In this document: positions 24,201-63,269 of the stretch, one piece after another
Position numbering within the stretch: position 1 is the stretch's first letter
Layout of the letters: every line of letters starts with the position of its first letter
Assembly: GCF_035594765.1 (NCBI RefSeq)
Contig: NC_085846.1
Location: 10,465,190 to 10,529,189, forward strand
Reading direction: 5' to 3'
Source: Anolis carolinensis
Taxonomy: Eukaryota
DNA: 64,000 nucleotides
Notes under the pieces: generated by a model
The model's input: the letters and a program-made list of their open reading frames with translations, nothing else
The model's database searches: none
Told to the model about the DNA's origin: nothing
Made by a program: the position numbers and the translations under genes

Positions 24201-27200
24201 TTATTATTATTAAAGTTATTTCCAACTTACAGAGATTCTAAAGCAAGTCATCAAAACCCACTGAACCCTTGAAGCAGGGATGCTATTTAAAACCACTTCT
24301 TTCCATCAGAGGGAGTAATAATGCATTTATATAAACAGCTCTCTGCGAAGTACAATATTATAATTGGAACAATATGTTTTAAAGAAATTTGTGAGGGGAA
24401 GGAGTTATTATGACCTTCTGTAAAGAGGGATGACAGGTCGCTTCTAAGGACCACCCATTGAAGCACCTCTTTTCACCATGGCAAGCTCTGAAATCAAACG
24501 GAGACTGTCACAGACCCCATCACTTGTTTTGAGCCAAAATAATGGGTCCTTAGCACTATTTTGGCTAAATTCATGATTTCCCCCCCGTGATTACAGGTCT
24601 GCCCAATTTCACAATTGCTTTGTAGTTCTGTGATGGGGAGCAGGAGCAACAACTAGAAGTCATCTGATGGCAGTAAATTTACTGTGGCTGCCTGTAAAAT
24701 GAGGGGATGGACTATAAGTGTGATGAGGTGGTAAGACTTGATGGCTGAACAGGGATTCAAATCTTGGTCTCCTGAGCCAAAGTCCAATGTTCAAACCACT
24801 ACTGCATACTCACTTTTAGCATGACCACAAACATGTATTTACCTTCCTTACTCCTTAGCAACTAGTTGGCCACTGTGGAACTGGGATACAAAAACAGGTA
24901 GGATATGAGTTGAATCCTTTATGGCTTTTCTCATGACAAAAAGGAGTGAAAACTCTATATTTACATGGAAATGTTGTAGCAGATAGCATTTATATAACTC
25001 TAATTGTACATACAGTTGTAATGCATTATCCTGCATTCATGCACTCAGGGCTTACCTGCCACAACTGTAAATCAAGAAGCATTCTTTTCCCTCCATCTGC
25101 CATTCCTCTGTGTTTCAATTTGGATGAAAGCATGGCTTGCAATGCATGTGCCACGGCATAGACAGCATTGTAGACACTGTAGCTCTGGCCTGTCATGCTC
25201 ATTTCAAAAACAGACCCAGGAAGGGTTTCCAGTCTCTCCTCCCCACTGCAGGTCGTCCCACCATCCTCATCTAAAATAGATTTGGGGAATGAACATTCAA
25301 ACGCATGTTCCCAAAAGACTCTTATAAAGCCATCTTCTTTTTCTGAAACAGGATTTCGCATCTGGATAAATTTCTGGAATCCTAACACTTCCTTTGAGGG
25401 AACTGCTAAGGATATTGCACCATGGAGGAAGTCTATGTTCCAAGTTCTTTGAAAGGGAAGGGATGTGAATTCCATCTGGGCTGTCATAATCCAAATTGTC
25501 CCATTTCTCAGTCTTGAAATGTCCTCAAATTCTGAAATCAAAGGCAACGTCCTCAAAAATATCATGATCTGGTTTTCTCCATGTAAGAGGATAACACTGG
25601 CAGTGCTCTCCATTATAATCCTATATGTTTTAAACCAATCCGCTACCATTTCAGTGAGATCAGTAGAATATTTTTCTTTGGGTAGCCCTTCTATGAAATC
25701 AAAACAGATACCTTCACGAGTAAACATGGGTAATATGTTCTGTGCAAACATCTCTCCGCTCTCACTACTTATGTAAAATAGCCCAATCCAGGTCCAGTTG
25801 AAATATAATAGTAACTGGAGAATGCCCAAAGTTTCCTTATCCTCATTTGGAAACATGTGGTGAAAAAAAGCAGCTTGGATGTTGCCGTTCAACACAGGAG
25901 CAGAACCATATAAGAACTATGGAAATAAAGAAATGAAGCAAATTAATATATTCCTAAAATACTGTTTTGTATCTCATTTTCATTGTGTGTGGATGGGCAT
26001 TGGTGCCAAATTTCAACTTTGAGACTGTGTGTTGACTCATCCATAAGCATTCTTGGATTCTAATCCAGTGCATAAGAGCTTAAACTAGGCTAATCCATTA
26101 GTATAAAAAAATGCTTCTGGATTCCTTTATGCATTTTAAATTAAATAGATTAACAAAGTCCTCTCTTTACATAAAGGTACAAAATTCTACCATAAGTATT
26201 CATGTATTCCAGTGGTTCCCAACCTGTGGTCTGTGGACAACCAGTGGTCCTCAGGAATGAAAATATGGTCCACAGCCTCACCATTACTACACTGTTGCCT
26301 TGAAACCATGCGGCAATGAGAGCAACTGGTCTCGCGAAACCTTCTCATAGTGCCAAAGCAATGGGGATATTGAGAAAGGATAGGCAACTACCCACAAAAT
26401 ATTATTACTAGCACATCAGCTTTAGATTGGGTGAGCAGATGGCAACCTCCTGGATGGCATATGTTCTGCATCAGAAATGAGAACTGATGTGGTCTATCCA
26501 ATGCTATTTTCTGAATCAGCACCCCAAATAACCAAACTGAATCTAAAGTTGACCAAAAACTGATTCGTAACCCTTTTGGTACTAATGTTGGAGAGTGGTC
26601 CCTGGTCAAGTGGTCCTTGGTCAAAAAAGGTTGGGAACCACTGCTGTATCCCAGCCCACTTCATGAGACCAGACTGTGAAATCTTAAATAAACTATTTAG
26701 TTTCTAACGATACTACTGGTTTAGTTTCTAATGATACCCTAACACAGCTATCTCTTTCAGCATTTGTCCCCAAACATCTGAGATTCCTGACTCACATTCA
26801 TATCAAGTATCAAATATTAGTATTGATAAGCTAATAATGTGTTTTCTCTTAGAAAAGGAAAAAAGGAGGTAGACAAATGTAATAACATTAGCTTTCTTTG
26901 CATCTCGTGAGCCCATCTTGCCTGTGGAATCTTGTAAATGGAAAGAACTGCTGCCATGAAATAACAAGGATTAGGTCCTGCGATAACAGATACTGCCTTG
27001 TTCTGGACATCACATTTGTAATTAGGAATGAGTTTATCATGTGTAGAAAGAAGCGCCATTGAAGCAAGATAGATCCATCTTGCCAAGAAATAGCTGCTAG
27101 AGATATAGATGCCCAGGCTGGTATTCGGTAAAAGTCCTGGATTTCTATTTATCTCATGGATAGCAAATGCCATGGCCAGGGTGTGCTGGTAATGATGCGT

Positions 27201-32139: not shown

Positions 32140-33302
32140 TCACTTTTTTTTCTGTATTACCAGCTGTCCTTGCTTGTTTAATGTGGGGTGCACCAATATA
32201 ATGAAACATTTTGGAGAAAAAATGCAACCCAGTAAACCAACACTTGAGGCTAAGATGGAGAAGATCTCCATAGCCACTGTGTATTTTCCCTTGGTGCTCA
32301 AATAGGCTGGAACAAAGCATAACCAAACACTACAGAAGAGCAGCATGCTGAAGGTGATACATTTAGCTTCATTAAAACTGTCTGGCAATTTTCTGGCTAA
32401 GAAGGCCACGGTGAAGCTGATGAAGGCTAGCATCCCCATGAAGCCCAGGACACAGTAGAACAGAACGGTGGACCCTTCGTTACATTCCAGCACAATTTCT
32501 GTAGCCATGGAGCGTGTGTCCAAATCTGGGAATGGGGGAGAGATTGCCAGCCACACCAGGCAAATAATGGTTTGAATAAAGGAAGAGAAAATGACAATGG
32601 AGCTGGCCAGTCTTCTCCCTATCCATTTCCTCATCCTAGACCCTGGTTTGGTGGCCAGGAAAGCTAGAACCACAATGGTGGTTTTGGCCAAAATGCAAGA
32701 AACAGCCACCGAGAAGATGACCCCAAAAACAGTCTGTCGAAGGAGACAGGTCACCTTCTGAGGTTCACCAATGAAAAGGAAAGTGGAAAGGAAGGAGAGC
32801 AGGAGGGCAAGGAGGAGAGTGTAGCTGAGACTGCGATTGTTGGCTTTGACGATGGGGGTATCTGAGTATTTAAGGAAGACCGCAAGCACCAAGATGGTAA
32901 TGAAAGAAAAGGAGACTGCAAGAGTGGTCAAAGCAATTCCCAAAGGCTCTTCATAACTCAAGAAGCTTCTGCTTTTCTGAATGCAAAAGTCCCTGACATC
33001 GTTTGAATATTGATCTTCTTGGCATTCAATACAGTCATCCATATCTGGAAAAGAAACCAAAGTGTATTTACAAGAGGAAATCCTATCCGTGACAGATAAC
33101 ATAAAATGTTTTTATATTGTACATCTCACCTTTCTGATTTGAAATCTTTCCTTCTGGACATGGAAGGCAGCTATAGCAACAAAATGGCATCCCTTCCACC
33201 TTAATCTTACTATAGCCTTCTTGACACTTTTCATTACACACGGAAATGGGCTGCACCTATGAATAAATGGAAGTAACATATTTTGTCTAAAAATAATATT
33301 TG

Positions 33303-33352
<50 letters not shown>

Positions 33353-36300
33353 AGTGAAGGATAGCAGCAGAGAAACGTGAAATGTGGTTTTTTGACCCCA
33401 CCCCCTTTTTCTGTTTTGGAGTATTTTTGATGTACAGAACTTTTGAAAAGGCCTTCAAATCTGAGAGTTATAAAACTTATTTTATTTAATGCAGTGGTTC
33501 CCAACCTTTGGGCCTCCAGGTGTTTTGGACTTCATTTCCCATAGTTCCTAATAGCTGGTAAGATGGCTGGGATTTCTGGGATTTGAAGTCCAAAACATCT
33601 GGAGGTCCAAAGGTTGGGAACCACTGATTTAATGTCTACGGTCTTTAAAGAAATTTGACATTCTTATTTCAAAAATGATTTAGTGTATCATGTACTTTTT
33701 CACAACTTGATTTGCCATTTCTATTTTGTAATAAGTGACTCACAAAAGAATAAAGAAGTAAGGGCTTAAGTTCCTCTAAGGACTTTCAAAATACTTTAAT
33801 TCATGGATACAAAACACAAAAATGTGTTCAAAACATTAAAAGAAATCACACTGGGACATCAGCATCTGTGCCTAATCAAAATGGAGTAACAATTGAATTT
33901 TGTTAAAAATAATGAAAAAAAACTACACATGGTATGACATTTTAAATGTGTGTTTTTAGCTTCAGTAATCGAAAATACATTAAAGATAGCTTCAATATTG
34001 AAAAAAATGCTTTTTTTAATTACAGGCCTGTGTATTAAAAATTTCAGGACCATGAGAAGTAAGATATGGTTTGAAAAGCAAAGATATTCTCAATTCATCC
34101 CAAAATATGTACAAGACCTACCTGGTTGAACATGCTGGGCCAGGTAATATCACTGGAAGTAATGCTTAACCTTTTCTCGACTGGAGCATAAGGATCAATC
34201 TTTCCAATTTTTACTTTGACAATGGACAGATTTAGGACTACGACCCAGTTGATAATATCAAAACCAGCTTCTATTTCTCCATTTTGATTAAAGGAAACTT
34301 TCCCCCCAGAACTATTGTTAAATGAAACACTTCTCAAATAGTGGTGGAGCTATACAGGGTGACAGAATGACAATAAGGTAGATGATAAAGATAGCAAAAC
34401 GTGCAAAGATCTAAAATAAAGAAGATCCATCTGAAGATCTGGAGAGATTCTTCACTAGTCACAAAATCAAGGGCTTCAGATATGTTCCAGAAGCAGCTAG
34501 TCACATATGGCCAAACTTGCTATGGTATTGTCTACACAATCCTGCTGGGCTGAGACCACATTGACCAAATTGGATCTTTACCTTCATGTTACTGCATTTA
34601 CTCACAGAAAACCAAAGCTCTAGGTCATTGTGGGTACCCTGTTCCGAATCTACTGATCTGCATGCCTAGCAAGAAGGTCAAGGGCAATGTCTACTCTTTC
34701 TTGCTGGTTGCAAGGGTACCCTAGCCCGACATCACAACCCTTGAAAGGCTATGGTTAGACTATGGCAAGGTGCTCAGATAGAACACTGTAACCGTCTAAT
34801 AGCAATGACATTGCTGCCAACATAAACAAAAGTGCCTACCCTTTATTTGCATTGATCGAGGGTGGCAACCAGGGAATTGGGTTGAATGGGAGCTGATCCA
34901 GGTGTCTAGACTGCCCCAAAGTTCCAGGATACCCCAGAATTTGAACTCTGGAATCTCCTCCATCTTTGCAACACTCAGCAATGATACTGTGAAGGTGACA
35001 GTCCAGCAGGTTGGATGTGGTCTTTGGCTATCTGCACAACAGTCCTGGATCTGCCATGTAAACCTCCTGGTATACGAGTCCCTAGTTGAACATCCAGATA
35101 ACTCATCAGACCCTTTGAACAAAGTACAAGATGGGGGAAACCTAAATACCACACACAAATGCACAGGACCCTACCTGCCACAGCTGCTGCTGCATCTGTC
35201 TCCTCCCATCATGCATTCCACCGTGTTTAACTTTGTATGAGTGCATAGCTTGCAAAGCATGGGCCACCACATAGACAGCATTGTAGACACTGTAGCTGTG
35301 AGCAGTCATAGTCATTTCAAACAAAGACCCAGGAAGGGTTTCTAATTTCTCCTCTCCAGTGCAGATGTTTCCTATGTCCTCATTTGAGGCAGTGCTTGGG
35401 AAAGAACACTGAAACGTCAGTTCCCAAAATACCCTCATCAAGCTCTCCTGATTTTCCAAAGCAGGGTTCATGTTCTGAAGGAATTGCTGGAATCCTGAGA
35501 CCTCATTTGCTGAAACTGCAAAAGATATTGTACCGTGGAAGGAGCGTAGGCTAAAATATCTTTGAAAAGGAATTGATGTAAATTCCATCTGGGCTGTCAT
35601 GATCCAGACTTTGCTCTTGGGTGGTCTCTCCTCAAATTCTGCATCATGGAAGACCATTCTCAAAACCACTGTGCATTGATTCTCACAATATAAGATGACA
35701 ACGTTGGCGGTGCTTCTTGCAATAACCTCATACATTTCATAATACTTCAACACGAGATTCTCAATGTTGGTAGAAAAAGTTTCTCGAGGCAAGTTTCTTA
35801 CAAAATCAAAGCAGATACCTTTCTGATGGAACATGGGAAGTATGTCATATACAAAATTTTCACCGCTTTCATGACTTATATAAAGCACCCCAACCCATGT
35901 CCACTTGAAATTCAAGAGCAAACGGAGAATGCCTTCATTCTGATGGTACTCATTTGGGAACATCCAGTGGAGTGAAGCAGCTTGGGCATTGATATTCATC
36001 ACAGGGGCAGATCCATATATGAGCTTAGGAAAGAAAACAGAAATCGAATAATTAAAAATATATAAATGTTCACATCTTTATTTCCCAGTTTACATGCATT
36101 ATTACATAGACAAGCAGCAACATTTCCACCCAGTCATCATAAGATGTCCCATGGTCAGCCAAACAGATTTCCCTTCAAAATTGTAGAAGAAAAATGCCAC
36201 ATTCCCCCATTATAATATGAGACAAAGGTAAAACGTTTTCCTCTGACATTAAGTCCAGTTATATCTGACTCCAAGTTGGTGCTCATCTCCACTTTTAAGC

Positions 36301-39300
36301 CAAAGAGCCGGCGTTGTCAGTAGACATCTCCAAAGTCATGTGGCCAGCATGACTGCATGGAGCGCCGTTACCTTCCCACTGGAGCAGTACCTATTGATCT
36401 ACCCACATTTGCATGTTTTCGAACTGCTAGGTTGTTAGACGCTGATGCTCCTTTTTTGTCAGCAAGTTCAGCAGCTCAGTGGTTTAATCTGCTGCACCAC
36501 CGGAGGCTCCGATTATAATACAATCTGACTCTTAATCAAATATTTTGTTTTTCAGTATTGGCTAGGGGATAAGATCCCTCTTTTCATATATCCAGATCCT
36601 TCTAGAACCCTCTCCGAACCCTTGAGAACAAAATACAGCTTGAACATTCCTTATCTAGAATTCTGAAATCCAAAATATTCCAAAATTCTAAATTGTCCTT
36701 ATGGATGACTGAGCTAGTGACACCTTTGATTTCTGATCATTCAATGTTTCATGCACAAAATTATTCAAAATATTGTATAACATTATCTTCGGGTAATATA
36801 AGTTGTAGATGAAACATAAATAAATTTAATGCTTAGACTTGGGTCGCATCTACAAGATATCTCATTATACATTTATATGCAAATATACATATTCAAAATC
36901 CAAAATCCCAAACACTTCTGATCCCAAATATTTGAAATAATGAATACTCAATCTATAATTGGTTAAAGCTGAAGAGCACACGGTTTTCTTCATAAGAAAC
37001 ATACTGCTGCCTCTCAACATATTTAACTGTAAAATATCGTTATTCTGAGACAGATATATTATTTTTCTCTTTTTTTCATTTCTCACCATACATTACTGGA
37101 GGCAAATGCTTCATTCTGCATAATGATAGGACTGACCCTGGTAAAACCCAACAGATTGCATTTGAGTTTGCTACCATTTCCATTTTTACAAAACAGCAGG
37201 AATGAATAAAGGAGCTGCACATTTAAAATCCTAAACATAGCCCAATGCTTTACTGATAAGCAGCCCAACTGGTTGCCTGATCTAAACCACAAAGATGGAG
37301 TGAATGATTTCTTGGAGTTCAAAGTTTCATGAGTATGTCTTACCTGTGGGACCTTGTAGAGGTTCAAAATGTTGGCAACATATCGACAGAACTGGGAGTT
37401 AGGGCCCACAATAAAAGAAACTGTATTGTCCTTGTCATCACATCTGTAGTTTGCGATGAATCTGTCATGGGTGGAGAGAAGTGCCATTGAAGCAAGATAG
37501 GTCCACCCTGCCATGAAATAGTTGTTGAAAACATGGATCCCCAGTGTGATATTAGCTAAGATATTGGGATTTTCATTGATCTCCTGTACAGCAAACTCCA
37601 AAGCCAGGATGTGCTGGTAATTTTGACTAAAGAACCTATAAAGAGAGTTAAATCCTTTTTCATGGTTTGCATATTTGTTTATTTTAAATTGTGTAATACT
37701 TTTAATGTAAGCTGCTTTGAGTGTTCTTCAGGAGAGAAAAAGCAGGGTATAAAAAAACATAAGAATAAGAACAATAGTGCATCTCCTTCGGAATATGATC
37801 TCTGATACCATTTCAATGTGATGTGATTGATATTGCATAAAAATTAGAGTTGTGCGTGGAACCCGTTTTCCTTTATTACATTCATTCTTTCACTAATTTC
37901 ATTTCTTCAGGAGCATTAACAGGAAGCCCCCTCCCTGCACAAAAGCAATCAAGAGCTGATCCCGGCTCCTCGCCTGCTTTTCGTGAGCAGCCTCCTTGCC
38001 TTGGAGAGTGCATGTGTGGCATGCAGCCTGCCTGCAGCTGAGCGCCTCCTCTAGAGTAAGAAACAGAACTTACCTCCTTGCCTTGGAAAGTGCATGTATG
38101 GCGTGCAGCCTGCCTGCAGCTGAGCGCCTCCTCTAGAGTAAGAAACAGAACTTACCTCCTTGCCTTGCAGAGTGCATGTATGGCGTGCAGCCTGCCTGTA
38201 GCTGAGTGCCTCCTCTAGAGTAAGAAACAGAACTTGCCTTAGAGAGTACGTGTGTGGTATGGAGTGAGCACTTCCCCTCTAGAGTAGAGAAACAGGTAAA
38301 AGGCCTCCTTAAAGTGCACACCAGTGCCTGCAGCTGAATGTCTGAGTCGAAACAGTTTAAATGCCTATGGTGGGAAGGGGAGTCTGGTTAGCCTCCTCTC
38401 CATGGGCCGATAGAAAACAGGGAAAACAGATATCTGCCCTCCTGATTTCAGGAGGCTCCCAAAAACATGAATGAGAGCCCCCAACAAAATCGAAGGCACA
38501 AAACGGGTCAGGGTTTACCCTGAAAGTATAACCCTAATAAAAATACTGAACATAGTAAAGAGAATCAGGTAATGGATGCTGGAACCAGGACTTCTGTGAA
38601 TATAGCAGACAGATTTGGGGGCCATAAACACAGACATGGCATCACGTTAAATTAGAACACATACTGCTTTATTTGACATTTTAATGTCTATGTAATCTCT
38701 CTTTTGTCTGATGGATTTCTGAACTGGACAAATTATTAAATGAGGGACTAACAGTCATATTTCAACATGAGTATGTACAAAGATAAAGCCAGAAATTGCA
38801 TTATTGCAAGGAAGTAATGGAAATACAACATTGATGAAAGCCAGCAGAAAATACAAGGAGATATGGGTGCCAGGGAGGGTAAAAAATAGCAACAACAATA
38901 ACAGTGAGATTGCATGAAAAGCAACATTTGCTGAAATTCTTTTAACTTTCATTAAAGGGCAAGATCCTTATCCCTTATTTACTTGGAAAACCCTAGACTA
39001 TATAAAGAAGGTCTGCTTTCCTCACACAAAAATGAACTTCATTAGACTAGTAACAAGAATATACTTTAAGGTACCAATTCTGTAGCTTGAGAGAATTAAT
39101 GTTCAAAAGAGGTGGAAGTTTAGATGGAGGGTCTTTTCAGGTACTCCTATGCACACCCAAAGAATATCCTGCAAAATTGGCTTTGGTATAACTGTATCAG
39201 TGTTATGATTATATATACAATAGCCCCCTACTCACAATAAGCCTCAAAATGATCCCTTTCCATACTTGCCATTCTAATATAGGAATTTATAAAGCAATCA

Positions 39301-45449: not shown

Positions 45450-46938
45450 CTACCTTCCCCTTCTTATTAGCTGTGCTGGCTTATTTAATTCAGGGTATAC
45501 CAAAATAATGAAATATTTTGGGAGAAAAATTAAGTTCAGTAAACCAGCACCTGAAGCTCCACAGCCACGGTGTATTTCCCCTTGATGCTCAAATAGGCTG
45601 GAACCAAGGTCACCCAAAACACTGCAGAAGACCAACATGCTGAAGGTAATAAATTTAGCTTCATTAAAATGACTAGGCAAGTTTCTAGCTAGGAAAGCCA
45701 TGGTGAAGTTGACAATAGCTAGTAGACTTGTGAAGCTCAAGACACAGTAGAAGAGGACAACTGAACCTTCATTACATTCCAGTACAATTTCTTCCCTCAT
45801 TGAGTACATGTCAACATCTGGGAAAGGCGGAAATGTTGTCAGTCACACAATGCAAAGAGTGGTTTGAGATAGAGAGCATGAAAGAACAATGGAACTGGCC
45901 AGTCTATTCCCCACCCATTTCCTTATTCTAGACCCTGGTTTGGTGGCCAGGAAAGCTAAAACAACAATGGTAGTCTTGGCCAATATGCAAGAAACAGCCA
46001 CTGAGAAGACAATCCCGAAAACAATTTGTTGAAGGAGACAGGTGACCTTCTGAGGTTCACCAATGAATAGGAAAGTGGAAAGGAATGAAAGTAGGAGAGC
46101 AATGAGTAACGTATAGCTGAGGTTGCAGTTGTTGGCTTTGACTATGGGAGTGTCTGAATACTTAGCAAAGATCCAAAGCACGAAAGCTGTAATGAAAGAA
46201 AAGACAATTGCAAGGGTGGTCAGACTGATCCCCAAAGGTTCTTCATAGCTCAAGAAGCTTATTTCTTTGAGGATGCATCCATTAATGCCACTGTTGGGAA
46301 ATGCATCCTCCTGACACTGAAGGCAGTTGATCATATCTAGGGGGAAAACACAAATATATGCTCATAAAATGCCTATCTAGAGTTGTTTTATACCTTCAGG
46401 TTAACTCTTGATGTTACATGGATAGATGAAGGACAAGCCAGGAGAAGATAATGAAAAGTTATAACCACACAATGCTCAGGTAACTTCTCCAAACAACCTC
46501 CCAATTTCAGGTATAAGAAGGGGGGAGAAGCAAGGAGTCATTGAAACCTGTTTAAAAATGCATTTTCAACTATTCTATAGCTGGAAAGAAAATGGATTAA
46601 ATGGTTTGTTTGGACTTTTGACATATTTAACACGATATCCCAACCACACCCCCAATCCTTCAAAACATAGGAAAAAATAAGCCTATATATTTTGTTATAA
46701 ATCATGTGCAGTTTAGTTAGATATTTTTGTACAACGAATAACAAGTGTGTACCTGCTGCTTATGTACATATTGTACAGCACAGCTAAGGTGTTCTCTTTG
46801 GCATATCATCTTACCTACTCGATCTGAAATCTTTCCATCCTGACATGGAAGGCATCTGTAGCAACAAAATGGCTTCCCTTCAATCTTCACTTTGCTATAG
46901 CCTGCTTTACACTTGTTGCACCTGGAAATAGGTCGTGT
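45450..46938 (-). pseudogene. V2R pseudogene E: only exon 5 (46815-46938) and exon 6 (45450-46336) remain
   Basis: Cysteine-rich exon ([16 protein letters not shown]) and 7TM exon; TGA at 45843-45845 where paralogs have Trp, +1 frameshift near 45617 (CSVLG for CSVW), deletion of the EIFSILA segment near 45557; no exons 1-4 visible upstream. Confidence 0.88.
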
Positions 46939-48440: not shown

Positions 48441-51400
48441 CCACTCTGTGGAACAAATTACGTCCAGTGAGGCAGATCCATCAATCAGACTGAGTTTGAT
48501 TGTGTTGGAGCAGTCAGGAAACATCACAGAAGATATGAAGCTTCCAAAAGTGACATTAAAACCAATACAACCAGATTCCATGTATCCTGACATTCCTCCC
48601 ATCCAACTTTTGCTTTCTCTTATCACTTTTTCAGGTCTCCAGGGACTTATGAACATTCATAAATCTTCCAGACTCACTTTCTCTCACAATCAGATTTTGT
48701 GAATTTTTGGTGAATTCAGATTAAACCTAAACTGAAATGAGATTTTTAGTGTGGACTATGGACTTCATCCCACTACTGGGGGAGAGCGGAGAAAATACAT
48801 GTTGAGAAACGCTTGGAAAAACACAGCGGGATGAAGTCCTATGATTACATCCCAAATCATTACACAGAATTATTATATCTGTCAGTATATGGTAATAATA
48901 ATATTACAGATGTTTATTACTTTGTCAACATATTCTACTCATCTATAGATTACCACACTATATTGTTAGTGCTGCTTTCCCACTTTAAATCCTATGGATG
49001 TCTCCTGTGGCATTTTGGAGTTTGTAGTTTAGTGTGAGACACAATACGTCTCTGGCTGAGATTTTTTAAGGGTCCAATTTAAAACACAAATCCCAGGATT
49101 CCACAGGAAGTAGACATAGGATTTAAATATAATGTGTAGTGTGATGATCTCCTATGGAAACAATTAGTCAGAAGGCAGTTCTTGAACGTCTTCCTGGATG
49201 GTGTCTTTTTGTTCATTAATGTATGAATAAACCATGACACAATTATTTTCTATGTATTAGATGGCATCCACCTTCATACAATCCGCTGCTTTTCCCCCCA
49301 GAGTGACAACAAAGTTCTACCAGCATGTCCTGGCCTTGGTGTTTGCCATCAATGAGATCAATGACAATCCAAAGATCTTGCCCAATGTCACTCTTGGATT
49401 CCACATCTACGACAGCTACTCCAATGCAAAGATGACTTATCGTACCACTTTGGATTTAATCTATAAATCACAACAGTTTCTTCCCAACTACCAATGTGGC
49501 ATCCAGAAAAATCTAGTAGCTGCTATTGGAGGACTTGATTCTGATACCTCCTTATATATGGCAGAAGTATTGGTCCCTTACAAGATACCTCAGGTAGAAT
49601 CTGTAGATGTGATTTAATTGCACTTATAGAATTTGCTCTTCCTGATTCTCTTTGGAAGCAAGTTCATAGATACATTTATTTGCAAATAGCCATAAAAGCA
49701 AAGGTGGGATGGAATAAAGAAAGGGAAAATGAGGGTAAAACAGATCTTGCAGCAGACGTTACTCTATATGGGGGTCCAGAGTATGGTACAAATGCATGAG
49801 ATGTTTCTTGACTGTAGTGTCACAATTGAGTGAAATTTGCAGCTCTAATGCTTCTTTAAGCATTATATATGATGCAGGGTTTCTGATAACTCCTACTAAT
49901 GTCTCAAAAGGTGTTCAGATATTAATTGTATTTCTGCTTTGAAATGGTTGCCTTTCTCCTTCTAGATTTCCTATGGCTCTTTTGAACCATCAGGGAGGTA
50001 TGAGACCGATTTGCCGCCCTTTTATCGCATGGTTCCCAATGAAGGCCTTCAGTATCAAGGAATTGTCCAGCTCCTTCTGCATTTCAATTGGAAATGGATT
50101 GGGCTCATAGTTATTGAGTATGAGAGTGGAGAACACTCCTTGATGACTCTGGAATCCATGCTTTCCCAAAATCAAATCTGCTTAGCTTTCACCGAAAGAT
50201 ATCCTCAAAATCCCCGGGTTTACCTTGGAATAAATGATATGATCAATGACATTCTCAATTATAGTCCACTTTTCATGGGCAGCACAGCCAATGCAGTGGT
50301 TATCGATGGGGACAGTGTGACCATAAGGACCCTGGCATATATCATATGGGGTAGAGCAGTGCTTTATTATCTTCTAGATCCTTGGAACAAGATGAAGACA
50401 TCCTCTGGGAAGGTGTGGATTACAACAGCCCAGATTGATTTCACATTTAATACCTTGCAAAAAGGCCTCAATATGCAAATGTTCCATGGTGCTATTTCCT
50501 TCGTAATTCACAGAAAAGAGGTTCAAGACTTCCAAGAATTTCTTCGGACTCTTGACCCAAACATGGCAAATGGAGATGGCTTCATCAGTGATTTCTGGGA
50601 ACAAGCATTCAATTGTTTGGTTTCTGGCACTACTGATCCTACAGGTTCAGATGATACATGTACTGGAGATGAGATGCTGGAGGACCTCACTGAACCATTC
50701 TTTGAAATGAGCATGACTGGCCACAGCTATAGCATCTATAACGCGGTCTATGCGGTGGCACATGCCTTGCACATCATATACTCATCTAGATCAATTCATA
50801 GAGTGATGGGTGATGGAGATAGGGGGAGACCTCTAAAAGTGGAGCCCTGGCAGGTAATGTCTTCTCGAAAACCATATGCTGATGTGGTGTGAAGTGGTCA
50901 AGCCATCGGTATGCCATTTCCCAAACCTATTTGAATTATCTCAGTTGGAGTTTATAAACCTCTTTCTCTTTTTTCTACCAAGCTCCACTCTTGGCTTCAG
51001 AGGGTTTCATTCAATAACAGTGTGGGAGATGAAATTACACTCAATGAAAAAAGAGAATTAGCAGCAGGATTTGATGTCACAAACTTGGTCACCTTCCAAA
51101 ACGATTCCTACCAGAGAGTCACAGTTGGAAAGTTGGATCCCAAGGCTCCTCCAGGGAACGAGCTCATCATTGACGAAAAGAAGATCCATTGGCATAGAGA
51201 CCTGACGCAGGTAGGGAAATGGCCATGCTTTGTTTTATAAACTATGGCCACCCCCTAAAGTGGCAAGAAACTGCATTAATTCTACAGTGTAGATGCCTTT
51301 AAAAATGTGCACACACACGCTTTGGTCAAGTTGAATCATTGTGGGATTTTTTTTGGTTATGTGTCTTCACGTTGTTTCTGAGCTATGGCACGATTTCATC

Positions 51401-53541
51401 GAAGGGGGCTGGAAGAGTATGACTTGTTCAAGGTCATCCAGTGTGTTTCAATGGCTGAGTGAGGATTTGAACTCTGGTCTCTAGCATCATAATTCAAATA
51501 CTAAAAGCAATAAACCACACTGGTCATAATCATTGCTCCTGTATCTATCAATCCTAAAACCCTAAATGTAAAGTATTTTTTGTTTATGGATAGGTGCCCC
51601 CCATTTCTCTGTGTAATGACTTCTGCCGACCTGGTTATCAAAAGATCAAGAAGGAGAATGAACAACACTTTTGCTGCTATGATTGTATTCCATGTGAGGA
51701 AGGGAAGATCTCAAATCTGAATGGTAAGTGAAATAATATATGGTCAACAACTTTAGAAAGGCAAGGAAAATGTACCTAGGAAACTGAGTTGAGCTTTGAA
51801 AGGATGGGTGCATCTACACTATAGAATTGACACCACTTTAACTGGCACTGCTCAAAGCTATGCAATACTTGCAGTTATGCTTTATCCTTCTCTGTTGCAT
51901 TATGGGATTTGTAGTTTGATGAAATCATGCTATTTGTAGCTTGGTGAGGCTCTTCTTTGGCATAGAAAGCTAAAAACCTTGCAAAACTACAACTTCCAGG
52001 AATCCAAAGCATTGAGCCATAGCAACTAAAGTGGTGACAGACCTGCATTCATTCTACAGTGTAGATTCACTCGATATCAAACACCAGCTCTACATTAGTG
52101 ATATGAATTTCAAAACTATTATTTTGAGATCAATACTATACGGTACATGACCCTATACAAATTACCTTAGCATGTCATGACATTTTTATTGTTTTCTGGG
52201 TAACTGTCATTATTGTTTACACTGGAAGTTTTAGAATCATTACCAAAAAGCTCTGTTTTTAAATCTGTCTGCAGCTGGCTGACAAAAGGAGATTTCCTTT
52301 CTCCTTTCCGCTAACCCCAAAATAATACTAATAATATATGAGATTTTTCCAAAATTGAAAAGCACGTCTCAGCCTGAAAAAAATAATCCCCTCAGTCCAT
52401 AACACTAGTCTGTGATGTCAGTATTAACATCTAATATTACTAATATGGGTGTCAAAATATCTACCATTAGCTTGCCACAGTTCCTTGTCCCCACGCCACC
52501 TTGCATCTCAAAGTTAAGGTAAAGCCTCTACTTCCTATTTGACACCAGGAACAATAGCCTCCAATTGAGCAAGAGCAACAAAAATTGCACTGAGACACTT
52601 AAGTTCTTCATTCCACAGATATGGATGCTTGTATTAAATGTGCAGAAGATCAGTACCCAAACCTGGATCAGAATGGATGCATTGCCAAGGGAGTAAGCTT
52701 TCTGTCTTATGAAGATCCTCTGGGGATCACTATCACTTTGTGTGCCCTCTTGTTTTCCTTTATCACCTCTTTGGTACTTGGAACTTTTATTAAGCACAAA
52801 GATACTCCCATCGTCAAAGCCAACAACCGAAGTCTCAGCTACACGCTCCTCATCTGCCTACTCCTCTGTTTCCTCTGTCCATTGCTCTTCCTTGGCCAAC
52901 CTGGGAAAGTGACCTGCCTTCTGAGACAAGTATCCTTTGGTATCACCTTCTCCGTGGCACTTTCTTGCATCTTGGCTAAAACTATCCTAGTGGTTCTGGC
53001 ATTTTTAGTCACCAAGCCAGGATCCAGGAAGAGCAAATGGGTAGGGAAAAGGCTGGCAGCGATCATTGTCCTTTCCTGCTCCTTTATTCAAACAGGTATT
53101 TCTGCAGTTTGGTTGGGATTCTCGCCTCCTTTCCCAGAGGTGGACATGAGATCCTTCAAAGAGGCGATCATATTGGAATGCAACGAAGGATCTGTTCTTA
53201 TGTTTTATTGTGTCTTGGGTTTGATGGGCTGTTTATCGGCGGTCAGCTTCACTGTAGCCTTCCTGTCTAGAAAGTTACCTGACAGTTTCAACGAAGCCAA
53301 GTTCATCGCCTTCAGCATGTTGGTTTTCTGCAGTGTTTGGGTGTCCTTTATTCCAACCTACTTGAGCACCAAGGGCAAATACATGGTGGCTGTGGAGATC
53401 TTCTCCATCCTAGCCTCCAGCGCTGGGTTGCTAGCTTGCATCTTTTTCCCCAAATGCTACATCATATTGTTGAAACCTGAGATGAATCACAAGGAGTATC
53501 TAATTAAGGGGAAGAAACGAAGAAGCTATAAGTCCACTTGA
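48157..53541 (+). CDS. Vmn2r: V2R gene F, intact (~890 aa), divergent subfamily on the opposite strand; exons 48157-48368, 49302-49593, 49966-50853, 50983-51210, 51594-51723, 52619-53541
   Basis: [12 protein letters not shown] signal peptide, [59 protein letters not shown], 7TM; canonical splice sites; summed CDS 2673 nt, open. Confidence 0.93.
48381..48438. repeat. (TTA)n microsatellite just inside intron 1 of gene F
   Basis: Direct reading; starts ~12 nt after the donor at 48369. Confidence 0.95.
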
Positions 53542-56413: not shown

Positions 56414-59400
56414 ATGGACATTAGTCTTGTGCTTTCCATCCTAGGTATGTTGATGTTTGTTTGAAATTGTCCCTTTCGTTTCTTCTTACTAACTTCTTAC
56501 TAATCTTTTTCTATCATCTCTGTATTATGAAAACAGGTTTAAAAAAAACACCATAAAGACATAAAAATGTCCTTAGATGTAGCAAGTAGCATAGAAATTA
56601 ATGAAAATATGGTGGTGGAGGAGATGAAGGTGGTAATGGAGAAGGGGTTAAAAATAATAATCAAAACTTCATCTTGTCCATTTTTTAATATTTAGCATAT
56701 AAAGTATTTATATGCATAGGCAGATACTTTAGGTTAATCGTTCTCTCTGCTTTCTTGTTAGTACCTGGAAACCTGCTGATTGCTTATTCTGTCATAAGGG
56801 TCACCTTTGAGCTATTCAACAGTGGAACTCAGTGATCCTTCCTTGGAGGTTTTTAAACAGAGACTGGATAGCCATCTGTTTGGGGTGCTTTGATTGTGCT
56901 TTTCCTGCATGGCTGAAGGTTGGACTAGATCGCCCATGTAGTCTCTTCCAACTCTAGGATTCTATGATCCTATGATTCTATGTAGGCGTGAATCACTTAC
57001 ATAGAGTGTCGAGGCTAGTCCAGCCCCCTGCCATGTAAGAAAATCACATTCAAAGTACTCCTGAGAGATGGCTATCCAGCCTCTGTTTAAAAGCCTCCAA
57101 AGAAGGAGCCCATACAATTAATGATAAAAAGTGTTATCAACTGAACTGTGCTAGGAGCTGGCCCTTTGAAAACAAAATACCCCGTCTGGAACATCTGGAA
57201 AGTTATCTTTGCAGCTTAAGCTTTTAGTCTTTGCAAATAAACTCTTCTTCTCCAGTTTCTTTCTATCTTCCAGCTGTGATGCACATTGTGGTCCTGCAAG
57301 GAGCATCTTCAGGTAACCAGATGTCTTCTCATTATTCTTTTTGCCATTTCTGGTTAAATTTAGAGAAGTGATGCCCTCTTTGACGAGGAACTTTGTTGGG
57401 TTTGGTTCAGCCATGGGCTTAGAAACTCAGACCTGCCCATGCCTGGACGACCATAAGAAGCCACATTGTATTAGATCACCCTATTTGTCACCGGATCTCT
57501 TCCTATTTTCTACTTTGACTGGCAGTAGTTTTTAGGTTCTCAGGCAGAGAGTCTTTTGTCTTCAGCGGCTATTTGAACCTTCCAGGGACTAAATTGTCCA
57601 AGAGTTGAAACTGTGATCTTCTATATACCAGACATTTTTTCTTTCACTGACTTCCAGTCCCTTCTCATATACAGAACTCTGTATAGAAGTTACATCTTAA
57701 TAAGTGAACTTCAGTATTCAGGGATTAGAATTGAGTAGATTCATAATGTTCATATCCAGTAGATGTCTGCTGTCACATGTTTCAAAGCCAACAAAGTGAC
57801 AGTTACACAGCAAAACACATGGGACTATTGTGTATTGGGCACCAGTGCTTATCAAAGCTCACAGGCACTTTTGCAAATATCCTAATGCATGTTTTTGCAA
57901 TTAATTAACAGGATTTCTTAGCACATGGTAGTAAAAGTTACCGGGCTCCCATGTATACCAAAATACACATATGCTTGAGCCATGGAAGTTGGGGTGCTGT
58001 CAGAAAGGGATTTCCAGAATGTAGAACATGTACTGAAGCTGGATGTGAAACCTAACTTTGTTGCCTTCCTTTCTGAAGCTCTGCACCCCCCAAAAATCAC
58101 TGTCAAGCCCCAATATCCTGAATATTTTGAAGGCGAGAAGGTTAAGTTCAGGTGCTCAGGATTGAAAAATAGGACTGTTGAAGAGTATAGGTTCTTCCAT
58201 AATGATGGGCAACAAATCCACAGAATGCCCCCTGATCCTTATCGAGAGGGCAGCATGGCTTTCAACGTTCAATTGACCAGCACTGGAAATTACACCTGTG
58301 ACTACTGGATGAAGAAAGATGGTACAAGGGTCATATCAGCATCAAGTGACACCATCTCCCTACATGTAACAGGTAGGTTTCTCTTTCTAAGGTTATTGAT
58401 GGCCCATGCCATCATACAGTAATGTAAGCAAATTCCTGTTTTAACCCCCCCCCCCTCCCTTTATCACAGCTTATTGAAGGCCAAAGGTGGGACTATCTAT
58501 GACTTCATTTGTTGTTGGACTACACCTCTTATCACTATTGGTTATTGGTAATTCTGGTGGAGTCAGAGCCCCAAAATGTGAGGGAGGATCCTGGTTTTCT
58601 AATTGTCATCCTTGTGGTCTACTCATTAGGTATGTGAAGAATAGTCACACATTTTCAACTCCTCAACTAAAAATCATCCCTCAATATGTTGGGACACTGA
58701 CCAGTGCAGGAAACCTTTAGTGTAGCACACATATGTGGACCTATGGTATGCTAAGCCATATAGCTCCCACCGTACTGTAAGACTCACACAGCCATGCCAT
58801 GTTTCAGTAGGAGGTGAGAAGCACTTCTCCATCATAAAATGAACAAAAGAATGTTGAGATCCCTAGATGACCCAGAGAGATCTCAGCACTGATATTATCA
58901 ATGTGCACCTGGCTGTAGGAATGAAACCAGACATTCTCCGCTCTTGCTTTCTCACCACAAAGCAAGTCATGGTCATGTGGGAGTTAGTAATTCATTGCCA
59001 ACCTATGGTGACCCGAAGGTGAACCTATCATAGTTTTCTGGGGCTAAGATTTTATGATTTACCCAAAGTCAATCAGCTGAGCAGAATTCATAGTCCAATG
59101 CTCAACAAATATGCAATACGGGGCGCAGAAATAACAGGCACAGGTTTAACTCCACTATAGCAAAAATCACATTTTAACCAAGATATTGCAACATGATAAA
59201 TACATTTATTAGGGAAAAATTCAGGAAAAACCCATACCGTTTTCAGTGCTGATTTTCAGACAGCCTCCATTCCATTTTTTTGGGACCTTCCAATAATTTG
59301 GAGGGGGAAAATACTGTTTCTCATTCAGCATGTGCTCCATTTCATCCAAGTCAATTCAAGCCCCGTCGCCCGTCCCATTTCCCGAGGTTCAGATTTAGGA

Positions 59401-62400
59401 ACTGCTGGTATTCCCAGATCCCATTTTGAAAAATGGTACCGTGCACACCCCTAACGTGGAGGCTGCACCTCCACATTTATGTCAACCAATGCTACCCAAA
59501 AAAAAAAAAACCTTGTAAGTAGCAACATGCAATGTCCAACATGGTCATTTATGTGTTTTTTGGAGAATGGAGAGATGAATCTTTACAATGAACATCTGTG
59601 CCCTTTTAACACTTTTGTTATGTTGAGGGACAACCCAAAATGCTAAATGTCCCCTTTTCTCTCACGCTCCCCTTTTCCCAATGTTATATTGCACATTCTT
59701 GCAAAAGATTAGCTCATGATGCATTTTGTCAAAGTAAAATTCCCCAGCAACCCAAAATGAAAAATTAGCTGACCTGTGCTTTCATTTTTAACAATCCAGA
59801 AACAGCAACAAGTCGTTTCCTTTTAAAACCACAACAAAGTAAACATGTTACTGGGAACTAATAAAAATAATGCAAGAATGTAGCAGCACAGGCTGACCAC
59901 TAGATGACGAGCGAAACAGCATAGGGGAAAATTATGGAGCCCTTCTGGCTTTTCTGGCAGTTTTCCTCGCCAAAGCTAGCAATTTAAATTCCAATCAATG
60001 TGAATGCACACAACAATAACAACAACAACAACAATGTGGCCACTGTTGCACACATATTTAGAATAGAAAAGTGAAGCCTCTTGGTGTCTCTGGAAATGTC
60101 AGTTTGAGGCTTTTATCTTCCCTGTTTAACTCCAGCGGCCCCTGTATTTCCATCTCTCTCTCTGAAACCCTTGGGAGACTGGGTCAACCTAGAATGTACC
60201 GTTCCACCTGAAGCAAAGGATGTCAAAGAATTCCAGTACTGTGGTGGAAGGACATGCATCTTATCCATGATGGTGAATGGAAGCAGCCACACGCATGGCA
60301 TAAACATCACAGAACCAAAAGATATGGGGGAATGCCGCTGCCGTTATGTCCTACAACTTGCTGGGAGGAGAGTAGCTTCTAAGTGGAGTAATCCTGTCTC
60401 CATTGATGTTGCAGAACTACGTAAGTTTTGGGTTGTTTCAAACAACCTCCTTCCTGTATATTAGAGATTTTCCAGAGTGGAATAGCCTGACTTGGAGGAT
60501 GGTGGGGTCTCTTTCTTTGGAGGCCTTTGAACAAAGGTTGGATGTCCATATTTCAGGAGTGCTGTAGGATATGACTACATGGAGCAAGTTAATCCAAACA
60601 GTACCCACTGAATCCGGAGCCATGTCTACAAATTGCCCCCTTACTGGACTTTCCCTTTGTCCCAGTGCTGCTGCCACTGCTCCCCACTGGCCGTGGAGCT
60701 CCCTACAAGCAGCTGGCCATCATCTGGTCTAGTGCCTTGAAACCATGTATTAGGATACTGCTTTCTAAACATCAGAGATGTCCAAGAATGAGATAGGCTG
60801 ACTTGGAAGACGGTGGAGTCTCTTTCTTTGAAGATCTTTAAATGAGATTGGATGTAAGTGCTTTAGGGAACATCTATGTGTGATGCACCCAAATCCAGGA
60901 AATTTGGGGCCTGAAGCTTCACCATATCCAGAGCATATCTCTTGAATCTGGCCATGTGTCTAAGTGGTCCAGACGATTCCTTTGTTGGCCCATCCCTATG
61001 TTGCTGCTGCCATTCCCAGTGGGCATGGAGCTCTCTGCAATCACCTGACCACCATTTCACCATGTGCCTTGAGCCCCTATATCAGGAGGAAATTAAGTAA
61101 ATAATAAATCAACCGTCTTTTGTCAGATCTGCTGAGATCATAATGAGACACCTGTGTGATCAGCAAACAGAGGATAGAGTGACCCCCTTCCTTCTTGCTG
61201 GTAACATGGGTACCCCATTCTGACAACATCAGGCATGACCGCAATGGCCAAGTGCTCACAAGGAGCCTTATGGCCCACAGACATTGGCAGTGGCAACACA
61301 GGGACAATCTGCCTTCTTTTCCTATACTGATCAGCACAAAGAAAGGGTGATGGCTGCAATATCCATCTGGATGGTAGACCTGTCAAAACAAACCCAATAT
61401 TGCTATCCAGACAGCTGGATCCTCCAACTTTCCCAGAAGCAGAGCAGAAAATCCAAGATACACTCCAGTAGTAGCTGGGCATTGTATAGTCTGCCAGTGC
61501 TGTATTTGAGGTGAGTTCAGGGGTTTTTATTTGTGCAGATAAGCCTTTAGTTTGTATTCTTGCATAGCAGGGGGTTGGACCTGGTATGCTTTTCAGTCCA
61601 ACTCTAAGATTCTATGATTCATTTAAAACGGTTAATAGCTTTCTAAAGTATGGTTGCAAAAAAAAAGAAACCACCCAAATGAAGGCCCAAACAAGGGGGA
61701 AATACATGATCATATACAGTAATACAAGCTGACTGTATTACCAAAAATGCATTTTTTTAAAAAAAATGGCATCTATAAAAATGCACATTCATATGCAGTG
61801 AAAGCCATTGAATAATACATGGAGTATGTTTATCTTTCCAACCTTGCAGTCAGTGTTTTTGCAGAAGGAAAAGGAGGTTTTTTTAAAAAAAAAAATTGTA
61901 CATCAACAAATGCCAAAAATAATTATGATCAAAATTAGTATGTAGTAATACATTCACCATGGTGTAGTGGTTTGAGCATGAGACAACAACTCTGGAAATC
62001 ATATACCTTGGACAAGTCATACCCTCTCAGCCTGGAGGAAGACAAGGGTAAACCCTTTCTGGACAGATTTTGCCAAGAAAACCCCATAATGGGGTTATTT
62101 TAGGGTTGCCGTAAACCAAAAAGACCAAAAGGATATTGGCAAGAATGACAAGAAACAATATGTCCAATCCAAAAGGAGTAACCACTGATGTGCTAACAAT
62201 CTTTCTCATGCCAAGTCAATATGGAATCATATAGACTACCAAAAAGGAGTAACTGGTGAACCCATCTAAATCATATGTTACCAAAAGCATTATCAGTATT
62301 ACATTCCCAACGTTTAGATGAAGGCAATTTATTTCAATTAAAAACTCATAATGGTATACAATGCACTTGAAACATCACCTGGATCCAACATAGCTTTAGG

Positions 62401-63206
62401 TGGATAGAGACTTTGGTACGCAAAGGTATCTTACAGCACCTTTGAGATTATTTAAGGGCACATCTATACAGACTACTTATTTCAAAATGTGGGAGAATAA
62501 TGCTGGAATTTGTAGTTTGGTGAAGCATCAGCAATTTGGTGAAGATTAAAGTGACACTTTCATGATTCCATAACATCGAATCATGGCAGTTAAATTGGTG
62601 TCAAACTGTATTAATTCTGCAGTGTAGGTGCATCTTCAATCTATGAAAGCTTATACTGTACTTTCATAGGTGCTGTAAGATCCCTTTGCATACTGATATT
62701 ACCAATGAATATACATAGTCATTTATTTGAATTCACCTCCTGTAGAGACTTTAGATATTGCAGCTAGAGAGGCTTTTGTTTCATTGTCAGCACAGTTTGC
62801 TTGAAAATCAGTGTCCTTCCACCACCACCAGTGTGCCAATTCTTGCTTTGCCAATTTTTCAAGTAGTCTTGGATGTGATCTGAATGAAAGCCTCTCTCTC
62901 AAATAATTTATCTTAGAGGTGACTGAAAATATGGATGTGATAGACTAGCTAATCTTGCCAAAGGAGCCTGAAAAATCAAGATGACAAACAAACATTGGGT
63001 TGACCAAACCAGAATCGATAAGTCTTATATGATTCCGAGCAGGAATGTTCTGACTTCCTCATGGATGTGCGAACTATTCATTACACTATATAACTGAGAA
63101 ACTCTCTTTCTGTTTAGATATTGGATGGGAACGGATGTTGGCTGTCGGAGGCTCCTTCTTCGCCATCAATGGTCTTATCTTTTCGATCTCCCATTTCTTT
63201 TTTTAA
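56414..63206 (+). CDS. Two-Ig-domain type I membrane receptor (LRC/Fc-receptor-like, ~245 aa); exons 56414-56444, 57274-57312, 58079-58372, 60136-60420, 63118-63206 (stop)
   Basis: All introns phase 1 with GT-AG sites; spliced product MDISLVLSILAVMHIVVLQGASS-ALHPPKITVKP...FRC...GNYTCDYW...SASSDTISLHVT-AAPVFPSLSLKP...LEC...GECRCRY...SKWSNPVSIDVAELH-IGWERMLAVGGSFFAINGLIFSISHFFF*. An additional small exon between 60421 and 63117 cannot be excluded. Confidence 0.8.
56810..57110. mobile_element. Two CR1 3'-end fragments in opposite orientation (56810-56982 plus, ~57000-57110 minus)
   Basis: GGAGGTTTTTAAACAGAGACTGGATAGCCATCT ... (ATTCTATG)n and its reverse complement AGATGGCTATCCAGCCTCTGTTTAAAAGCCTCC. 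Confidence 0.8.
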
Positions 63207-63269
63207 GATTCAGGTAAATGTCATTTCCTGTACAAGTCAAATGCCTAAGGGATTTGGGGATTTCCTTCA

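Follow-up and report, generated by a model that had tools for sequence, protein, structure and literature searches.

A two-immunoglobulin-domain receptor gene of the green anole, probably of the adaptor-coupled activating type, and its conservation among sauropsids

A stretch of 64,000 nucleotides (nt) of the green anole genome (Anolis carolinensis, assembly GCF_035594765.1, contig NC_085846.1, positions 10,465,190 to 10,529,189), termed here the window, carries on its forward strand a receptor gene of five exons. Sequence, a structure model of an orthologue and analogy with known receptors suggest that it probably encodes an activating type I glycoprotein with two immunoglobulin (Ig) domains that couples to an adaptor bearing an immunoreceptor tyrosine-based activation motif (ITAM). 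The gene is conserved at low copy number among sauropsids. Genes of the Fc receptor (FcR) and leukocyte receptor complex (LRC) families usually turn over too fast for orthologues to be followed between orders. Here one tailless two-Ig receptor has remained recognisable and low in copy number since the split of birds and turtles from lizards, with a membrane span that has outlasted the ligand-binding domains in conservation. Leukocyte receptors of reptiles and birds are poorly mapped. For comparative immunology the gene offers a candidate receptor for a conserved ligand, a defined candidate adaptor-binding motif and a possible marker for the relationship between the FcR and LRC families.

Structure of the gene

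The sequence, read directly, gives exons of 31, 39, 294, 285 and 89 nt (Table 1), which sum to 738 nt, or 245 codons and a stop. All introns are of the GT...AG type with a pyrimidine tract before each acceptor, every junction is in phase 1 and the exon translations are open throughout. A first-pass annotation, made from the sequence alone, had proposed five phase-1 exons and a protein of 245 amino acids (aa), and both are confirmed in the sequence; the exon pattern of Anolis sagrei and the junctions of the protein model XP_062813074.1 agree with them. The four sequons it named, NRT, NYT, NGS and NIT, are all present in the exon translations. It had also described three of the exons as invisible among open reading frames, and indeed only exons 3 and 4 sit within open reading frames of at least 40 aa.

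The exon 1 region and its A. sagrei counterpart share 88.7% nucleotide identity across 71 nt, and the N-terminus encoded by exon 1 is identical in both older NCBI anole isoforms. Exon 2 has an alternative acceptor at 57256, 18 nt upstream, which produces an in-frame exon of 57 nt. This longer form is found in XP_008113558.1; the 39-nt form is found in the second older isoform, in XP_062813074.1 and in A. sagrei. On its own genome the A. sagrei orthologue has exons of 34, 39, 294, 285 and 89 nt. The leatherback turtle (Dermochelys) orthologue has exons of 31, 39, 297, 297 and 102 nt, the last of which encodes the membrane span and is spliced to a further exon of 38 nt. A vestigial splice donor past the anole stop codon is at nearly the same position as the turtle donor that leads to this short tail exon. 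The match of exon 3 to Pfam Ig_2/Ig_3 (E 5.5e-9), the exon patterns of A. sagrei and leatherback and the junctions of XP_062813074.1 together confirm, from comparative sequence data, that the green anole locus is a real, intact gene, far beyond chance.

Table 1. Positions of the receptor gene and of neighbouring features in the window (V2R, vomeronasal type-2 receptor; GPCR, G protein-coupled receptor; LINE, long interspersed nuclear element)
Feature	Position	Strand	Description
Exon 1	56414..56444	+	31 nt; ATG at 56414, first 10 1/3 signal-peptide codons; donor GT at 56445
Exon 2	57274..57312	+	39-nt signal-peptide mini-exon
Exon 3	58079..58372	+	294 nt; Ig domain 1, 'a' type; GYRFF motif; sequons NRT and NYT
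Exon 4	60136..60420	+	285 nt; Ig domain 2, 'b' type; EFQY motif; sequons NGS and NIT
A4 run inside exon 4	60317..60320	+	read as A5 in older anole protein models
Exon 5	63118..63206	+	89 nt; membrane span to C-terminus; stop TAA 63204-63206
Arg codon of exon 5	63132-63134	+	
Invariant Asn codon of exon 5	63168-63170	+	
Vestigial splice donor GT	63214..63215	+	7 nt past stop
V2R last ectodomain exon	51594..51725	+	no part of receptor gene
V2R cluster, about five genes	5225-10591 (-), 21258-27173 (-), 32140-37601 (-), 45450-46334 (-), 49261-53541 (+)		class C GPCR exons
LINE	16489-19211	-	751-aa reverse transcriptase open reading frame and upstream endonuclease-like open reading frame

Database models

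The gene had been regarded as hidden. This holds only in part, as NCBI does list the gene, cut short in the earlier annotation and joined to a V2R in the present one. A word search aimed at exon 3 returned two proteins, XP_008113558.1 and a 246-aa protein of A. sagrei. The first, isoform X1 of LOC100562370, has 209 aa and is 100% identical to exon 3. The second, the A. sagrei orthologue, matches exon 3 at 86% and agrees with the five-exon model end to end. The two older isoforms of LOC100562370 have exons 1-3; exon 4 leaves the frame after 'EPK' and the proteins end before the membrane span, because the A4 run of exon 4 is read as A5. The A4 frame of the window is also the frame of A. sagrei and of XP_062813074.1. 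The A5 reading stems either from a mistake in that assembly or from a null or secreted allele that segregates.

XP_062813074.1, annotated on a 120-Mb contig of a chromosome-scale assembly as 'vomeronasal type-2 receptor 26 isoform X2', is 629 aa long, and its residues 396-629 correspond to exons 2-5. It reproduces three receptor junctions letter for letter, so that an independent model contains three of the four. The model splices the last ectodomain exon of a V2R gene directly to exon 2 at 57274 and omits the V2R seven-transmembrane exon (52621-53541, plus strand). Taken literally, exons 2-5 would form the 3' part of a fusion with the V2R and there would be no separate receptor gene; the chromosome-scale assembly on which the two are joined and the position of the V2R, on the same strand and 3 kb upstream, are in keeping with this. 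However, A. sagrei retains exon 1 with its ATG and hydrophobic start, the older models use this exon too, and a fusion is barely credible as an account of the gene. The joined model is in all likelihood an artefact, probably due to read-through or mis-merging, and conceals the receptor gene, since the V2R's own seven-transmembrane exon is skipped, half a signal peptide is buried internally and no V2R lies upstream of the orthologues in Lacerta, turtles and birds. The receptor gene is mis-modelled rather than unknown, and a stand-alone model is missing from current anole RefSeq. The anole annotation needs correction at this point, where the receptor is currently merged into the V2R entry.

Selection on the gene

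An exon-by-exon count against A. sagrei gives 0.073 nonsynonymous (dN) and 0.154 synonymous (dS) substitutions per site and a dN/dS of 0.47, with dN below dS at Fisher p = 0.0085. Divergence of the flanking introns between the two anoles is 0.13-0.37. The 300 nt past the stop codon show a Jukes-Cantor (JC) divergence of 0.078, which is below that of the introns, as expected for a 3' untranslated region. These comparisons show purifying selection on the coding sequence, and together with the conserved 3' flank they argue against a dead gene.

The gene might nevertheless be silent, or a segregating pseudogene, in A. carolinensis. Both older NCBI isoforms have the extra A in exon 4 and a stop ahead of the membrane span, and current RefSeq has no stand-alone model. 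On the other hand, the frame in the window is open across five exons with canonical splice sites, dN/dS is significantly below 1, the 3' flank is more conserved than the introns and intact orthologues are present in more than 20 species. Silence or decay of the anole gene is quite improbable.

Orthologues and phylogeny

Homologues were sought with the A. sagrei protein as query and then with the family alignment. Most sampled squamates have one protein of 235-277 aa, and Rhineura has two. The squamates with an orthologue comprise iguanians, anguimorphs, lacertids, an amphisbaenian, a cordylid, a gecko and seven snakes. Turtle orthologues are found in sea turtles and Chrysemys. An exhaustive profile search, which returned 2594 proteins at E <=0.001 with the best 150 of these listed, added orthologues from two birds, a crane and a goshawk. 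A second, adjacent copy is present in Lacerta and goshawk, and the orthogroup overall has one or two copies per species. No paralogues were found in the 64-kb window by tblastn of exons 3 and 4.

In a maximum-likelihood tree, the bird, turtle and squamate proteins with the order 'a' domain, 'b' domain and membrane span form one clade with support of 100/99. The inner order of this clade is that of the species tree, and the anole protein is sister to that of A. sagrei. Turtle paralogues, an alligator protein with four Ig domains and a caecilian protein fall outside the clade; the tree omits Lerista P0120, a model without the span, and most turtle paralogues. By domain order, exon pattern and this well-supported clade, the locus is a member of a conserved, low-copy sauropsid orthogroup. 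The first-pass annotation had described a reptile receptor of a possibly poorly described lineage. Turtles, lizards and snakes do carry it, but so do birds, and the description as reptilian is too narrow. The second part is upheld, as all orthologues are labelled 'uncharacterized' or bear automatic names, and the literature search turned up nothing about LOC100562370, the LRC/FcR families of reptiles or the membrane-span motif described below.

Of the best 150 of the 2594 profile matches, 14 were identified; they belong to a ray, an eel, a caecilian, turtles, a skink and birds, and one of them lacks an organism name. No mammalian orthologue is among these 14 identified proteins of the best 150 of 2594, which is not proof of absence. 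The top-scoring profile match is a 2368-aa protein (P0069) of the electric ray Narcine bancroftii, which has 17 matching stretches, the best of which covers both Ig domains. Because this protein matches the family profile, such pairs of Ig domains may predate bony vertebrates.

Membrane span

The span encoded by the last exon, in an alignment of 22 species, reads W-x-R-x-L-A-V-G-G-S-F-F-x-I-N-G-L-I-F-L-I-S-H and is followed by three residues. No variation is seen at W, one G, F, N, I and F, and R occurs in 20 of the 22 sequences. The Arg is near-invariant and the Asn invariant over squamates and turtles, and both are found in birds and in a caecilian variant as well. Mean column identity is 77% for the span, 59% for domain 1 and 53% for domain 2, which shows the span to be the most conserved part of the predicted receptor. 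In the AlphaFold (AF2) model of the A. sagrei orthologue, a helix at residues 214-245 runs to the C-terminus, with the Arg predicted at the outer boundary of the membrane and the Asn in mid-bilayer. The last 23 residues encoded by anole exon 5 have a mean Kyte-Doolittle value of 1.6.

The anole stop codon comes 24 residues past the Arg, and the tail is too short to signal and has no tyrosine motifs. Lizard proteins end three residues after the His and have 0-3 cytoplasmic residues. Those of snakes, gecko, turtles and birds have 6-17 extra C-terminal residues, none of which is a tyrosine. A tailless type I receptor of the activating type with two Ig domains had been proposed from the sequence alone; the position of the stop codon and the conserved Arg and Asn are in keeping with this proposal.

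Two span motifs for adaptor binding have been described. In activating LRC receptors the span has the motif NxxR and an acidic C-end, and an Arg in the outer part of the span couples these receptors to FcRγ (PMC6557307). The classical activating FcR span has the motif (M/L)Fxx(D/N)TxL, with an Asp or Asn within the span (PMC2413239). In the present family the residue three before the Arg is G, R, Q or S (the gecko alone has N), and at the C-end His or Tyr and aromatics stand in place of acidic residues. With respect to the FcR motif, the anole F-F-A-I-N-G-L-I agrees at the Phe and the Asn only, and a Thr follows the Asn in Pogona only. The span had been called FcR-like. It does have the central Asn, but the full FcR motif is absent and the Arg at the outer edge is of LRC style without NxxR. 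A caecilian protein named FCRL5 has the span variant W-I-R...G-G-L-F-F-L-I-N, and the span type therefore appears at least as old as tetrapods. Among the best 150 of 2594 profile matches, the motif is absent outside turtles, a bird and this caecilian variant.

Proposed mode of action

The predicted protein has a signal peptide spread over two small exons, two Ig domains of C2/I type and a single helix with which it ends. With 0-3 cytoplasmic residues it would not signal alone and would need a membrane partner. The Arg at the outer edge, the Asn in mid-bilayer and a Gly-Gly face may together dock a dimeric ITAM adaptor. This adaptor would most likely be FcRγ, with CD3ζ or DAP12 less likely; FcRγ is favoured by analogy with tailless Ig receptors that carry an Arg at the outer edge of the span (PMC6557307). 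Binding of a ligand by the Ig domains would then lead to leukocyte activation.

Turtles and crocodilians provide a comparison. Their paralogues, named A1BG-like, IGSF1-like, FCRL5 or OSCAR by NCBI, share with the anole gene the tailless GGSFF-x-IN-GLIF span core and the 'a' and 'b' domain types. The same tailless span ends many turtle proteins that have two to five Ig domains, and also an alligator protein with four. The paralogues differ from the anole gene in that their two to five Ig domains include a membrane-proximal 'c' type missing in the squamate gene, and in that they are expanded and lie outside the orthogroup in the tree. Turtles also have partners with immunoreceptor tyrosine-based inhibitory motifs (ITIMs): sister proteins alike in the membrane-proximal domain, whose span is uncharged and whose long tails bear ITIM-like motifs, e.g. 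VLYSEV (P0045, P0047, P0050 and P0059, against P0012 and P0018). As far as the predicted proteins go, the turtle arrangement is that of classic paired receptors and marks the Arg/Asn span as the 'activating' partner. Because turtle genes with this span have ITIM-tailed sister genes, the anole span is read as of the activating type.

Several observations weigh against an adaptor-coupled activating receptor. The span, compared by sequence, fits neither published adaptor-binding motif exactly, and its family profile finds no match in the PDB at E up to 10, though the PDB includes full-length FcεRIα chains. No ITIM-bearing inhibitory partner of the anole gene was seen by tblastn of the window or in the homologue searches. 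The older anole assembly implies a frameshifted allele without the span, or an assembly error, at the A4 run. The Arg could be a mere juxtamembrane residue and the Asn a driver of self-association.

This last point may be extended to a different account, in which the Arg, Asn and Gly-Gly serve self-association or a partner without an ITAM and the protein is a co-receptor or decoy. A central Asn and faces of small residues are classic drivers of helix-helix association, and both are present here. In addition, the span fits no known adaptor-binding motif, and one turtle subfamily places the same span on a tyrosine-bearing tail of its own. However, in turtles the span alternates with ITIM-tailed forms on similar ectodomains, which is a signature of adaptor-coupled activating receptors, and an outer-edge Arg on a tailless Ig receptor is the usual arrangement for FcRγ or CD3ζ coupling (PMC6557307). 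Self-association as the role of these residues is distinctly unlikely. The turtle subfamily in question (P0036-P0043, P0049, P0054, P0060 and P0067) has the Arg/Asn span and a 65-aa tail with conserved D-Y-Y-S-V-P and N-E-Y-x-E-E. This tail fits neither the classical ITIM nor the ITAM pattern.

As to the ligand of the probable activating receptor, a conserved self-ligand appears more likely than fast-evolving ligands similar to those of the major histocompatibility complex, because the gene has one or two copies and its tree tracks the species tree. Candidates are the Fc part of IgY or IgM, or a matrix protein; IgY-Fc is a guess. Reviews point out that sauropsids are without direct homologues of the mammalian IgG and IgE receptors and ask for the receptors on their mast cells and phagocytes (PMC5742104). 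Perhaps the W-x-R...G-G-x-F-F-x-[IL]-N span represents a third ancient class of adaptor-coupling spans, found from caecilians to birds, apart from NxxR and classical FcR spans and perhaps ancestral or sister to the latter. Its carrier would then be the missing sauropsid FcRγ-coupled Fc receptor (e.g. for IgY) and an intermediate between FcR and LRC that has persisted. The chances that all this is so are slim.

Ig domains and family placement

Domain 1 matches FCRL5, FcγRII and FcεRIα in the PDB. The family profile of this domain matches FCRL5 (E 2.3e-44, summed over nine domains), FCRL4 (E 2.1e-15) and domain 2 of FcγRII (E 6e-9, 39 bits), with FcγRI and FcεRIα scoring below FcγRII. PIR-B reaches 31 bits over six domains and LILRB 27-29 bits. 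The C strand of domain 1, 'YRF-H', has no Trp and aligns with FCRL5 domains. The missing C-strand Trp had been taken for an LRC hallmark. This is not tenable, since FCRL5 domains share the strand, which is thus no exclusive mark of the LRC.

Domain 2 alone has no Pfam match and no PDB match. Its family profile matches PIR-B domain 6, KIR3DL1 domain 0, CHIR-AB1 (27 bits), LILRB1 (25 bits), OSCAR and FcεRIα domain 1 (23 bits), and CHIR-AB1 is the top single-domain match. When the profiles of domains 1 and 2 are aligned to each other with hhalign, the probability is 99.3%. A mosaic of one FcR domain and one LRC domain was entertained and then downgraded, as this value makes the two domains mutual relatives. 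Exon 4 encodes five cysteines in A. carolinensis, including those in Y-C-G-G-R-T-C and C-R-C; A. sagrei has four in this domain and most orthologues two. With the odd number in A. carolinensis, one thiol could stay unpaired and allow covalent dimers to form. At the start of domain 2, six residues are missing in both anoles.

The AlphaFold model of the A. sagrei orthologue has two Ig domains and a helix, with a predicted local distance difference test (pLDDT) value of 85, and the strands of domain 2 are predicted. A fold search with this model finds as nearest structures the FcRγ-coupled LRC receptors, followed by FcγRs below about 39 LRC rows; the fold is slightly closer to LILR, NKp46 and KIR than to FcγRs. 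ESM Atlas features point to generic Ig-receptor clusters only. On sequence and model, the gene is placed as a separate sauropsid lineage within the FcR/LRC superfamily, with a fold and gene layout that lean to the LRC and a domain 1 sequence that leans to FCRL. The ectodomains had been called LRC-like. Domain 2 and the overall fold do lean modestly in that direction, but the best matches of the domain 1 profile are FCRL5, FCRL4 and FcγRII.

The signal peptide of KIR and LILR genes is encoded by an exon of about 34 nt and one of 36 nt. The second signal exon of the present gene, at 39 nt, is one codon longer. It has the same length in A. carolinensis, A. sagrei, Lacerta and Dermochelys, and the earlier observation that the mini-exon matches neither class of receptor genes is thereby strengthened by lizards and a turtle. 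FcR and FCRL genes follow a 30/21-nt rule for their signal-peptide exons (PMC2413239), from which exons of 31 (or 34) and 39 nt depart.

The gene may be a true LRC member, of the same cluster ancestry as LILR, KIR, OSCAR and CHIR, with a diverged NxxR span. Domain 2 and the fold lean this way, but the domain 1 profile favours FCRL5, FCRL4 and FcγRII over PIR-B and LILRB, the span has no NxxR except in the gecko and no acidic C-end (PMC6557307), and the immediate neighbours of the gene include no LRC markers. Membership of the LRC is possible but doubtful. The activating LRC receptors that couple to FcRγ (LILRA/PIR-A, NKp46, OSCAR, GPVI and FcαRI) have the NxxR motif and acidic C-end that the anole gene is without, whereas the anole gene has an additional invariant central Asn, a mini-exon of 39 rather than 36 nt and a domain 1 nearer in sequence to FCRL/FcγR. 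It also differs from them as a conserved low-copy orthologue rather than a gene of fast birth and death.

Alternatively, the gene may belong to the FcR/FCRL family as the sauropsid counterpart of an Fc receptor, e.g. for IgY, with an Asn span related to that of FcγRI and FcεRIα. All the top profile matches of domain 1 (FCRL5, FCRL4, FcγRII domain 2, FcγRI and FcεRIα) are of this family, and the 'YRF-H' strand is shared with FCRL5. The central Asn, corresponding to the Asp or Asn of FcR spans, and the Phe before it fit two positions of the FcR motif, as does the Thr in Pogona (PMC2413239), and the span and protein end are on one exon, as in FcR genes. Furthermore, CHIR-AB1, which leads the single-domain matches of domain 2, is a chicken IgY receptor, and the role is open in reptiles and birds, as they are without direct IgG/IgE receptor homologues (PMC5742104). 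In contrast, the second signal exon has 39 nt as opposed to 21 nt (PMC2413239), the span motif is only partly matched and the span profile matches no PDB chain. Domain 2 and the fold are nearer to the LRC, with FcγRs ranking under some 39 LRC rows. An FcR/FCRL origin is rather unlikely, and a separate lineage of the FcR/LRC superfamily is the placement adopted here.

The LRC-related IgY receptors of chicken, CHIR-AB1 and ggFcR, resemble the anole gene product in that they are sauropsid Ig-like proteins with an Arg in the span and a short tail. ggFcR lies outside the LRC, and the anole gene is likewise away from known LRC/FcR markers in its 10-kb flanks (PMC6557307). CHIR-AB1 has one Ig domain, ggFcR four and the anole receptor two. 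The crane and goshawk orthologues are 'uncharacterized' loci separate from CHIR-AB1 and ggFcR. The XFL paired receptors of Xenopus are also non-mammalian proteins that combine FcR-like domains with a type of span otherwise found in the LRC, and have been cited in favour of a shared ancestry of the FcR and KIR families (PMC2413239). They differ from the anole gene in that their activating forms have the NxxR span and some have 30/21 signal exons; the anole-type span was not reported in them, though a variant of it is present in a caecilian.

Genomic neighbourhood

The receptor gene shares the window with a cluster of about five V2R genes and a LINE (Table 1). Synteny was compared over 10-kb flanks of each locus. 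In A. sagrei the receptor gene is between a V2R and a 7tm_1 GPCR (L001 30907-32622), and in Lacerta an LTB4R-like GPCR (E 4e-74; L003 23839-25110) is directly downstream. By sequence comparison the receptor and the downstream GPCR look like a conserved local gene pair in Anolis and Lacerta. Bird neighbours differ and include MGAM/SI-like and MROH2B-like genes. No LRC or FcR landmark genes are present in the 10-kb flanks in Anolis, Lacerta or birds, flanks that are too short to place the paralogon.

In the V2R cluster, the seven-transmembrane exon at 45450-46334 on the minus strand is split into two open reading frames, and this copy may be a pseudogene. Short fragments of the C-terminal coding tail of the LINE are also found within introns 1 and 4 of the receptor gene, e.g. 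at about 56832-56957 and 60403-60567.

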